DNA of 64,000 nucleotides from Selaginella moellendorffii (taxonomy: Eukaryota > Plantae > Lycopodiophyta). Where the stretch lies: NCBI RefSeq assembly GCF_000143415.4, contig NW_003314286.1, positions 201,766-265,765 on the forward strand, given 5' to 3'. The position numbers were made by a program, and so were the translations under genes. Each line of letters begins with the position of its first letter. The stretch's first letter is position 1. This document shows, one piece after another, positions 38,872-42,353 of this stretch. The notes below the pieces were generated by a model. The model saw nothing but the letters and a program-made list of their open reading frames with translations, was not told where the DNA came from and did not search any database.

Positions 38872-40353
<1,482 letters not shown>

Positions 40354-40488
40354 CCCGGAACTAAAACCCCCCAAGTTAAAATCAAATTAAACCTCATCTT
40401 CGCGGTCCCAGCCGTTGGATCCTACCGACGGCCGCGATCGCTTCTAGGGGTTTTCCATTTTGCGAGGGAGATCCCATTTGTTACATCG

Positions 40489-40498
40489 ACGTGGCCCA
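40489..40498 (+). promoter_or_regulatory. ABRE-type ACGTGGC overlapping site-II GGCCCA in the divergent kinase/sHSP promoter
   Basis: Motif match only. Confidence 0.35.
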
Positions 40499-40753
40499 AA
40501 GGTCACGGCCAGGGTTCCTATTATTTCTCCCTCTCATTCCCAGCGCCGGGGGATCCAAGAACAGCGCTAGGGCTAGCAGTAGATCGATCGCGCCACGGCT
40601 CCTGGAAGAAATCGCGGCCTAGAATCACAGCAGCAGCACGGTGAGTTCTTCTCCTTCTTCCTCCTCCCCCTCTTCCGGGATTTCTTGGAGAATCACAGTA
40701 GATTTTCAAGGCCAGGGCCTCCCCAGCAAGGGCGCCCGGGACGAGCCGCCACA

Positions 40754-41062
40754 ATGCGGGTCTGTCTCGTAGAGCAAATGGCTAACAGTCAGGAAAGGAG
40801 TTGTGTAGCCAATCTGGAGAGTCCTAAGGGAAGAAGCAGCGACCGTGTGGGTCGTGCCAAGAAGCCGCCCTGGGATCGTGATGTTCACGCTCCTCGTCTC
40901 TTCTCAGACATTGAGAACTATAAAGGGAAGCCATCTTCGCCATCGCCAGTGAGGCGCCTGGAAAGATTGGTGCGTCGGGTCTCTTACTGCCCCAAATACC
41001 CCCAGCCAGATACACCACACTTACACACTTATGTGGTCATTCGGCACTTCGCTGATTCCTAA
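40754..41062 (+). CDS. 102-aa upstream ORF in the spliced leader of the sHSP gene (unknown peptide)
   Basis: GCCGCCACAATG start context. Lies between acceptor CAGTAG (40696-40701) and donor TAA|GTAAGC (41063). Confidence 0.55.
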   Translation: MRVCLVEQMANSQERSCVANLESPKGRSSDRVGRAKKPPWDRDVHAPRLFSDIENYKGKPSSPSPVRRLERLVRRVSYCPKYPQPDTPHLHTYVVIRHFADS

Positions 41063-41232
41063 GTAAGCTGGATTTTTCTTCACTTTCTTCTTCTTCTTCG
41101 TCTTCTTCCGTTTTGTTCTTCTTGTTCATTGCAACTGTTTGGTCTTTTTACAAGCTTTGTTTGTTTCCTTGTTTTGTTTTTCCTTTTATCATCTTCTTGT
41201 TTCTAATAGACTGTCGTTTCCAGGATTAAACC

Positions 41233-41696
41233 ATGACGAGCACTTGTGTAGATGTAAAGGAGCTTCCTAATTCTTACATCTTTGTGGCCGACGTCCCCGG
41301 CCTGAAGAACACGGACGTGAAGGTACGAGCGCTCTCATCCAAGTCATGCATAAAGTTTTAACACAAAACTCTCGCTCAATCACCCAACAAACAGAGGATG
41401 AGCGTGGGTGCTACTTGCAGGTACAAGTTGAGAACGATAGTATTCTAAAGATCAGTGGAGAACGGAAACGAGATGACAATCCCAACCATGACATAAAATA
41501 TGTTAGAGTTGAACGCTCGTCCGGCAAATTCATGCGAAAGTTTAACCTTCCGGCCAACGCCAATCTGGAAACCATCTCGGCTACTTGTCTCGACGGCCTT
41601 CTCACTGTTGTTGTGCCAAAGATCCCAGCGCCAGAGAGCCACAGGCCAAAGACTTTTGATATTGCAGTTGCCAACATCAACTTCGTCTACAAGTGA
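41233..41696 (+). CDS. Small heat-shock protein (HSP20/alpha-crystallin, class II-like) lacking the N-terminal arm
   Basis: MTSTCVDVKELPNSYIFVADVPGLKNTDVK|VQVENDSILKISGERKR..YVRVERSSGKFMRKFNLPANAN..DGLLTVVVPK. Intron 41323-41420. Confidence 0.93.
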
Positions 41697-42103
41697 TGAG
41701 CTCGCAATCGTTCTTGTTACTTGGCGGTGGTCGTGGAGGCAGAAGTTCTCTGGTCTTTTCATTTGCTTTTTTCTTTCCTCGGTGGATAGCTACTTGAGTA
41801 AGACTTTTAATTTGGCTTTGCATTGTGAGACTGACTTCTCTGTTTTAAACAAGGGAGAATTTGATCCATGGAACTTAAAACCAAAAGAATCAACGAGCGT
41901 CCTGTTTTGGATGTTCCGGGATGTTTCATCAGAGAACGAATAAGAACCTCAGAGGTTGTCAACAAATTGAGTGGAAAAGTCGAGCTTTATCGATGTAGCG
42001 CATGGTAGTGGTGGCGGTGGTGGTGGTCGCGCTGATCGATAGCTAAACCATGGTGGCCATGTTTTGGTGGGGGGGACTAGCGGTAACTTTCTTCGGTAAA
42101 GCA

Positions 42104-42110
42104 TATAAAA
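42104..42110 (+). promoter_or_regulatory. TATA box of PLD-alpha
   Basis: TATAAAA followed by two apparent 5'-UTR introns (~42165-42230, 42301-42351) before the ATG at 42354. Confidence 0.55.
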
Positions 42111-42353
42111 AGGGAGGCAGGAAGGGGGAAAGGTCTTCTCTGTGGGTCATTAAACACGTGTGAGGTACGTGTTGAGGACTGCAGCGATGTTACTGTTAGC
42201 GACCTTTCCGTGGCACATCTCTTCTTTCAGGTAGCAACATAGGGACCGAAGTTTGCTGCCGATCCAAGTTCGTCGACTACTGTGTGATCTCTCACATCTG
42301 GTGAGTGCTTCCTTTGCTTCGAAAGATCGTGGTGGGGCTTTGGGTTTCCAGGA

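Follow-up and report, generated by a model that had tools for sequence, protein, structure and literature searches.

A 102-codon open reading frame in the facultative leader intron of an arm-less small heat shock protein gene of Selaginella moellendorffii is probably incidental

The DNA analysed here is a 64,000-nucleotide stretch of the Selaginella moellendorffii genome (contig NW_003314286.1, positions 201,766 to 265,765 of the forward strand), which we call the window and whose positions are counted from its first letter; it is identical to scaffold GL377590.1. Our subject is the annotated gene SELMODRAFT_80181, which encodes a small heat shock protein (sHSP) of 121 amino acids (aa), together with an open reading frame (ORF) of 102 codons that lies in the leader region upstream of it. 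The protein is deposited under the accessions EFJ24055.1, EFJ35103.1, XP_002963232.1 and XP_002974535.1, carries the RefSeq name '17.3 kDa class II heat shock protein', and is matched with 100% identity by the translation of exon 2 (41421-41693) when this is compared with the protein collection (P0001). The sHSP is encoded on two scaffolds of the assembly GCA_000143415.2, which represent two haplotypes, and the model of the coding sequence (CDS) is the same and intact in both. An earlier note on this DNA, made from the letters alone, had proposed that splicing brings the 102-codon ORF to within 9 nt of the sHSP start, either as an upstream ORF (uORF) that would control translation of the sHSP by reinitiation or peptide stalling, possibly coupled to nonsense-mediated mRNA decay (NMD), or as the source of a partner peptide replacing the N-terminal arm that this sHSP lacks.

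RNA covering positions 40100-42300 was taken from four different studies, as transcriptome contigs in three runs (X1, X5 and X6) and as stranded raw reads in the fourth (X23), and junctions were listed from 3 reads upward. Contigs of this kind are evidence of the presence of a variant and not of its absence; they drop rare variants and are not single molecules. In X23 the first mate lies on the - strand for the sHSP and for the + strand PLD gene next to it, and on the + strand for the neighbouring - strand kinase gene, so the sHSP transcript is on the + strand. The features of the transcript, in 5' to 3' order, are the following (UTR, untranslated region; ACD, alpha-crystallin domain).

40488..40640, + strand: leader exon 1, 5'UTR without an AUG; the contig starts at 40488 in X1, at 40542 in X6 and at 40369 in X5
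40641..41223, + strand: main 5'UTR intron, 583 nt, GT..AG, holding the whole 102-codon ORF; joint found in all four runs
40754..41062, + strand: 102-codon ORF, present in the long-leader isoform only (alternative donor 41063); from the sequence, the X6 contig and the lower depth in X1, X5 and X23
41063..41223, + strand: T-rich intron, 161 nt, of the minor long-leader isoform; joint in X6, zero depth over 41062-41209 in all runs
41224..41322, + strand: exon with the sHSP ATG at 41233, codons 1-30 and the first ACD strands; annotated CDS exon 1
41323..41394, + strand: ACD intron as spliced, 72 nt, acceptor AG at 41393-41394; joint in all four runs
41395..41420, + strand: 26-nt stretch, intronic in the annotation and kept in the observed mRNA; shifts the frame to a TAA at 41446-41448
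41421..41696, + strand: annotated CDS exon 2, ACD profile positions 25-101 and a 24-aa C-terminal tail, stop at 41694-41696; HSP20 match, P0001
41798..41853, + strand: 3'UTR intron, 56 nt, starting 101 nt past the annotated stop; joint in X1 and X5, 6 raw reads in X23
41854..42020, + strand: last exon and transcript 3' end; X1 contig end at 41999, X23 depth about zero in 42024-42097

The transcript starts at approximately 40488-40545; one contig (X5) extends back to 40369, and the X23 reads begin in the bins covering 40470-40617. The leader junction 40640|41224 was found in all four runs, at contig depths of 18, 31.2 and 4.3 and with 5 raw reads in X23, which means that in the main mRNA the whole 102-codon ORF is intronic. 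A short leader intron at 40641-40698/40701, on which the earlier note had relied, occurs in none of the four runs: there is no 40640|40699 joint, and contigs continue through the region (X1 over 40612-40736, X6 from 40690 onwards). Its donor at 40641 is real, but it is paired with 41223.

The junction that puts the ORF on the mRNA, 41062|41224, was seen directly in X6 only, where a contig joins 40690-41062 to 41224-41253 and includes the sHSP ATG at 41233. In X1, X5 and X23 the depth is lower over 40641-41025 and falls to zero over 41062-41209, a pattern that fits a long-leader isoform better than an unspliced precursor. Judged roughly by depth, the long leader accounts for 8% in X5, 18% in X1, 25% in X23 and 64% in X6. 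It arises when the 5' splice site at 41063 is used in place of the one at 40641; no cassette exon is involved. The idea that the ORF and the sHSP share one mRNA is therefore borne out by the X6 junction, but it does not hold for the main mRNA, from which the ORF is removed within the 583-nt intron.

As read from the DNA, the ATG of the 102-codon ORF at 40754 lies within GCCGCCACAATGC and has the start context GCCGCCACAATG; no other ATG is found upstream of it back to 40369, which makes it the first AUG of the long-leader form. Its stop codon, TAA at 41060-41062, is followed immediately by GTAAGC, and the acceptor AG of the leader is at 41222-41223. Joined at 41062|41224, the mRNA reads TCC TAA GAT TAA ACC ATG; in this form the frame of the ORF is also that of the sHSP ATG, with a spacer of 9 nt and two stops between them. 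The ORF with its start context, the stop flush with the donor, the sequence of the join and the shared frame had all been described in the earlier note, and we confirm them in the sequence. Between the two haplotypes, indels are concentrated in 41063-41223.

The leader contains a 583-nt 5'UTR intron (40641-41223) and, further downstream, a second donor at 41063, and the ORF reaches the mRNA only in the minority long leader. Where it is retained, an ORF of this length that begins at the first AUG, in good context, and ends 9 nt before the sHSP AUG would be expected, from the rules established for plant uORFs, to act as a generic translational block, largely preventing translation of whatever lies downstream, and to mark the long-leader mRNA for NMD. 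To this extent the proposed translational control survives, since an inhibitory or NMD effect is plausible for the long isoform; a stalling or regulatory peptide is unsupported, as conservation of the peptide is absent (see below). The alternative splicing of 5'UTRs that contain inhibitory uORFs, and NMD triggered in plants by uORFs or premature termination codons, are well known, for example from the PIF3 and HCS1 leaders and the HsfA2 intron of Arabidopsis. The present locus is similar to such systems, in that an alternative 5' splice site sets a long uORF before the main AUG.

The coding part of the transcript also departs from the annotation. Pfam HSP20 profile positions 1-24 match exon 1 residues 7-30, and positions 25-101 match exon 2 (PF00011, 61.5 bits with a cut-off of 20.8, E = 8.8e-17 on exon 2), so that the protein begins at the ACD, in agreement with the earlier reading of the gene; PF00011 is also the precomputed family of P0001. 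The exon model of that reading differs from the observed splicing of the ACD intron, which breaks the frame. Each of the four runs has the ACD junction 41322|41395 (7 raw reads in X23), whose acceptor AG precedes the annotated one by 26 nt. The annotated reading frame requires an intron of 98 nt (41323-41420), while the intron observed has 72 nt, and the productive junction 41322|41421 is listed in none of the four runs. In X23 the depth is 4.14 in the bin 41358-41431 and 7.89 in the next bin, where use of the annotated acceptor would predict a depth of about 1 in the former; these values fit a near-exclusive use of the upstream AG.

Choice of the upstream AG breaks the sHSP frame after codon 30. 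From the ATG at 41233, the observed isoform encodes 47 aa (30 ACD residues followed by 17 unrelated ones), as against 121 aa in the annotated model, and the premature TAA at 41446-41448 sits about 350 nt upstream of the 3'UTR intron (junction 41797|41854). The usual NMD rule is 50-55 nt; with acceptor 41394 the distance from the premature stop to the next exon junction exceeds 50 nt, which by the general rules of NMD would be a further NMD feature of this RNA. In this respect, too, the locus resembles the alternative-leader and NMD systems named above, an alternative 3' splice site yielding the premature stop. Because the 3'UTR intron begins 101 nt past the annotated stop, even the productive mRNA is a candidate NMD substrate by the 50-55-nt rule. 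The RefSeq/JGI protein model of SELMODRAFT_80181 is without support from the sampled RNA, and most transcripts of either leader type are unable to make the sHSP under the sampled conditions.

The ACD intron of SELMODRAFT_80181 has AGs at positions -26, -24 and -18 from the productive acceptor, unlike the ACD introns of the three Selaginella paralogues examined, in which no AG occurs within 58 nt; in Diphasiastrum, AGs are found at -32 and -30. A candidate branch point of the CTCAA type may lie some 15 nt before the -26 AG, which would then be the first AG met, in agreement with its use in the RNA. Nonsynonymous divergence (dN) between SELMODRAFT_80181 and its paralogues or the Diphasiastrum gene is 0.155-0.196, with synonymous divergence (dS) saturated, and values among the other paralogues are similar; its terminal branch is also ordinary (0.31, with a median of 0.24). 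Taken with a CDS that is intact in both haplotypes, these values argue for purifying selection through most of the history of the gene.

SELMODRAFT_80181 is one of many sHSPs of this build. A length-limited search returned proteins of 119-124 aa with a common start, M-A-T/S-T-A/S-V-D-V-K-E-L-P, from Selaginella (at least 5 genes), Diphasiastrum, Marchantia, Calypogeia, Ceratodon, Sphagnum, Adiantum, Ceratopteris and Ginkgo, and no such protein was present among the flowering-plant matches of the same search. In a maximum-likelihood tree the arm-less proteins form one group (88/97), which stands with class II against class I (100/100), and their start Met aligns to an internal Met, that of the class II motif K-A-M-A-A-T-P. 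A phase-0 intron between K30 and V31 is common to every locus checked from Marchantia to Selaginella, namely the Selaginella paralogues, Diphasiastrum, Marchantia and Ceratodon. Judged by their sequences, the arm-less sHSPs are an old class II-like clade, made of an ACD and a C-terminal tail and reaching from liverworts to Ginkgo. The published inventory of Physcomitrella sHSPs includes, with no comment, the 121-aa PpHsp13.4, which may belong to this clade on the basis of its length only (PMC4228350, Table 1). The K30/V31 intron varies in length, from about 914 nt in Marchantia (L009:3094-4007) to about 183 nt in Ceratodon (L010:3094-3276), and several Logan and ENA protein calls (P0009, P0015 and P0018) read out of this intron into exon 2.

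With the other arm-less proteins (P0002-P0023), SELMODRAFT_80181 shares the length of about 120 aa, the start M-A-x-T-x-V-D-V-K-E, the K30/V31 phase-0 intron and the single tree group. It differs from them in its leader: only SELMODRAFT_80181 is shown to splice out a 5'UTR intron whose end is 9 nt from the ATG, and its paralogues have no pyrimidine-tract-plus-AG acceptor just upstream of the ATG. Its likeness to the class II sHSPs, such as pea HSP17.1-CII and Arabidopsis HSP17.6/17.7-CII, is seen in the tree and also in the ACD, for which the closest solved structure is PDB 5DS1, the ACD of pea HSP17.1-CII by itself in a construct of 95 residues (E = 1.7e-30, with the alignment beginning at residue 3), and in the C-terminal tail, which has D-I-A-V where class II has I/V-x-I/V. 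Unlike class II proteins, it lacks the N-terminal arm of about 45-55 aa, starting 2 residues before the ACD-only construct, and its gene has a phase-0 intron inside the ACD and no heat shock element (HSE) upstream. In the spliced leader, in-frame stops stand directly upstream of the sHSP ATG.

Since the arm-less state is clade-wide, no gene-specific partner peptide is needed to account for it. The suggestion that the 102-aa peptide replaces the missing arm fails on two further grounds: the other loci of the clade are without such an ORF, and the peptide is unlike N-terminal arms. We also considered a relic arm, comparing the peptide and three frames of 40545-41223 with 48 sHSP arms; the best match had an E-value of 0.59 in what is a tiny database, and the candidate was rejected.

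Searches with the 102-aa peptide gave no relative. It has no match in Pfam or in a word-based search of 5.8 billion clusters, nothing below E = 0.59 in PDB, and no usable match in the protein atlas, where its language-model recognition score is low. An exhaustive HMMER search of 1.84 billion representatives returned two weak matches only, neither of which we retain: a C2H2 zinc-finger protein proved spurious in pairwise BLASTP (E = 3.4), and a bacterial GAF histidine kinase was judged unrelated on its Pfam content and the marginal E-value of 9.7e-4. A tblastn comparison with the leaders of related sHSPs had been put forward as a check in the earlier note; against eight sHSP family loci (four Selaginella paralogue or haplotype loci, Diphasiastrum, Marchantia, Ceratodon and one Logan contig) it yielded no counterpart, the best match (E = 0.88) lying on the wrong strand and downstream. 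Conserved-peptide uORFs (CPuORFs), such as the sucrose-control peptide of bZIP11 and that of SAMDC, are defined by amino-acid conservation among orthologues. The 102-codon ORF resembles them in that one mRNA isoform carries it ahead of a main ORF related to stress, but it is without amino-acid conservation and is far longer than typical CPuORFs. A hidden RNA gene in the leader intron was considered as well and rejected, as the sole match in an Rfam scan of 40300-42200 had 10.8 bits, which is at chance level.

An ORF of this size can arise by chance in such DNA. An ATG-initiated ORF of at least 102 codons occurred in 191 of 3000 dinucleotide shuffles (6.4%) of the 518-nt long leader, the 64-kb window contains 55 ORFs of at least 102 codons, and unrelated ORFs of 94-135 codons are found in the 1-kb upstream regions of other Selaginella paralogues. 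One of the paralogues, SELMODRAFT_81204, has an annotated gene of 121 aa upstream (L004:2576-2941), which has no Pfam match and ends 59 nt before the ATG. As a counterpart of the 102-codon ORF this call was rejected, since its product is of low complexity, rich in S, T, A and R, and unrelated to the 102-aa peptide; GC-rich DNA of a leader or promoter has probably given rise to a spurious ORF here.

Taking into consideration that (i) the ORF is intronic in the main mRNA and (ii) its peptide has no relative in the collections and loci searched, we regard the 102-codon ORF as most likely a fortuitous, lineage-specific frame in GC-rich leader sequence. That it is incidental, in a leader intron that is facultative and belongs to an ordinary arm-less sHSP gene, is the reading we favour, with a confidence that is real but stops well short of certainty. 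The leader itself is an ordinary alternatively spliced one; unexpectedly, the main isoform is unproductive. As far as sequence comparison reaches, the ORF is neither a conserved regulatory peptide nor a partner of the sHSP.

Several observations weigh against an incidental ORF. Its start context is strong, and the long leader turns up in each of the four runs and has, in X6, more coverage than the short one. The region of the ORF has an exon-like GC content of 52-60%, compared with 33-44% in the flanking T-rich intron. The codon-usage score of the ORF does not discriminate, as it lies between the coding and non-coding distributions: 26% of stop-free non-coding frames score at least as high, and 27% of coding chunks score as low or lower. 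The one difference between the haplotypes inside the ORF is synonymous, which offers too few sites to serve as a proxy for Ka/Ks.

A different explanation turns on the RNA rather than on the peptide. Regulated unproductive splicing, through the choices between donors 40641 and 41063 and between acceptors 41394 and 41420, might gate the sHSP post-transcriptionally, although we hold this to be unlikely. In its fuller form, which we put forward only tentatively, a translatable sHSP mRNA would be made only in certain tissues or under certain stresses (heat, desiccation, abscisic acid), in place of transcription driven by heat shock factors, and the 3'UTR intron would add to this control. What speaks for such a gate is, in part, the gene itself: its CDS has been under purifying selection, its branch is ordinary and both haplotypes are intact, and from this constraint and intactness it follows that productive splicing must take place, or must have done so until recently. 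From run to run the long leader makes up very different shares of the RNA (roughly 8-64%), and the K30/V31 phase-0 intron has been kept from Marchantia to Selaginella. The lack of a clear HSE array upstream, reported in the earlier note, is upheld by our search of 40200-41300, which found no GAAnnTTC or TTCnnGAA dimer and no trimer with 8 of 9 matches; with no HSE within 1 kb, control at another level is plausible. No 8/9 trimer was present either in the 1 kb upstream of the Selaginella paralogues or of the Diphasiastrum locus. Against the gate stand the productive junction 41322|41421, seen in none of the four runs, and the competing AGs, which are not shared by the three Selaginella paralogue introns and are thus gene-specific and not a feature of the family. 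It is doubtful, if conceivable, that this HSE-less, arm-less sHSP is switched on by splicing and not by transcription, with donor 40641 replacing 41063 and acceptor 41420 replacing 41394 under particular stresses or in particular stages of development. Equally speculative is the corollary that such a switch would turn a uORF-blocked or frameshifted, NMD-prone RNA into a translatable mRNA, the 102-codon ORF then being one of two 'off' states.

The same junction can be read as a sign of decay. SELMODRAFT_80181 would then be a young, splicing-dead pseudogene or a non-coding transcript, in which new AGs have captured splicing, the intact ORF is unexpressed and the variation of the leader is noise. 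The frame-breaking junction is the only one seen in the four runs, SELMODRAFT_80181 alone among the paralogues carries AGs at -26, -24 and -18, and the protein departs from its relatives at conserved positions (L for Q in the C-Q-D-G motif, PAPES for PPPEP); with at least four other arm-less paralogues in the genome, its loss would be tolerable. We nevertheless give this explanation a low probability, as the CDS is free of stops and frameshifts in both haplotypes, dN and branch length resemble those of the paralogues, and the transcript is well expressed and fully processed. On the RNA sampled here, SELMODRAFT_80181 would be either splicing-gated or freshly inactivated.

That the 102-codon ORF is a functional cistron, giving a regulatory or stalling peptide or a micro-protein that acts by reinitiation, NMD or cooperation with the sHSP, is very improbable, for all that it opens at the first AUG of a real and recurrent isoform in strong context, shares the frame of the sHSP AUG 9 nt away across a double stop, has an exon-like composition and differs between haplotypes at a synonymous site alone: it is spliced out of the main mRNA, has no homologue found and is missing from the loci of relatives, is scored low by the language model, carries a chance expectation of 6.4%, is dispensed with by the rest of the arm-less clade, and precedes an sHSP ORF that is broken in the observed transcripts.

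The neighbours of the gene are a protein kinase gene on the - strand, with a CDS beginning at 40353, and, on the + strand and downstream, a C2-PLD gene. Transcripts of the kinase extend to 40421, so that they and the sHSP transcript stand head to head, at most about 120 nt apart and possibly overlapping; this layout suggests a compact bidirectional promoter without HSEs. On the other side, a single 1669-nt contig of X5 extends unbroken from the 3' exon of the sHSP (41854-42162) across the junction 42162|42229 and on into the PLD gene, which could be read-through or overlapping UTRs. The depth at 42024-42097 is about zero in X1 and X23, and an adapter-tagged contig end at 42106 suggests a separate start of the PLD gene there.

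Had the proposal for the 102-codon ORF held, the locus would have offered a rare example in which a long uORF is devoted to an unusual chaperone. What the evidence leaves is a common situation, a facultative 5'UTR intron that happens to contain an open frame. The arm-less clade to which the sHSP belongs is old and little studied, and the ACD-only constructs of structural work have in it a natural counterpart.

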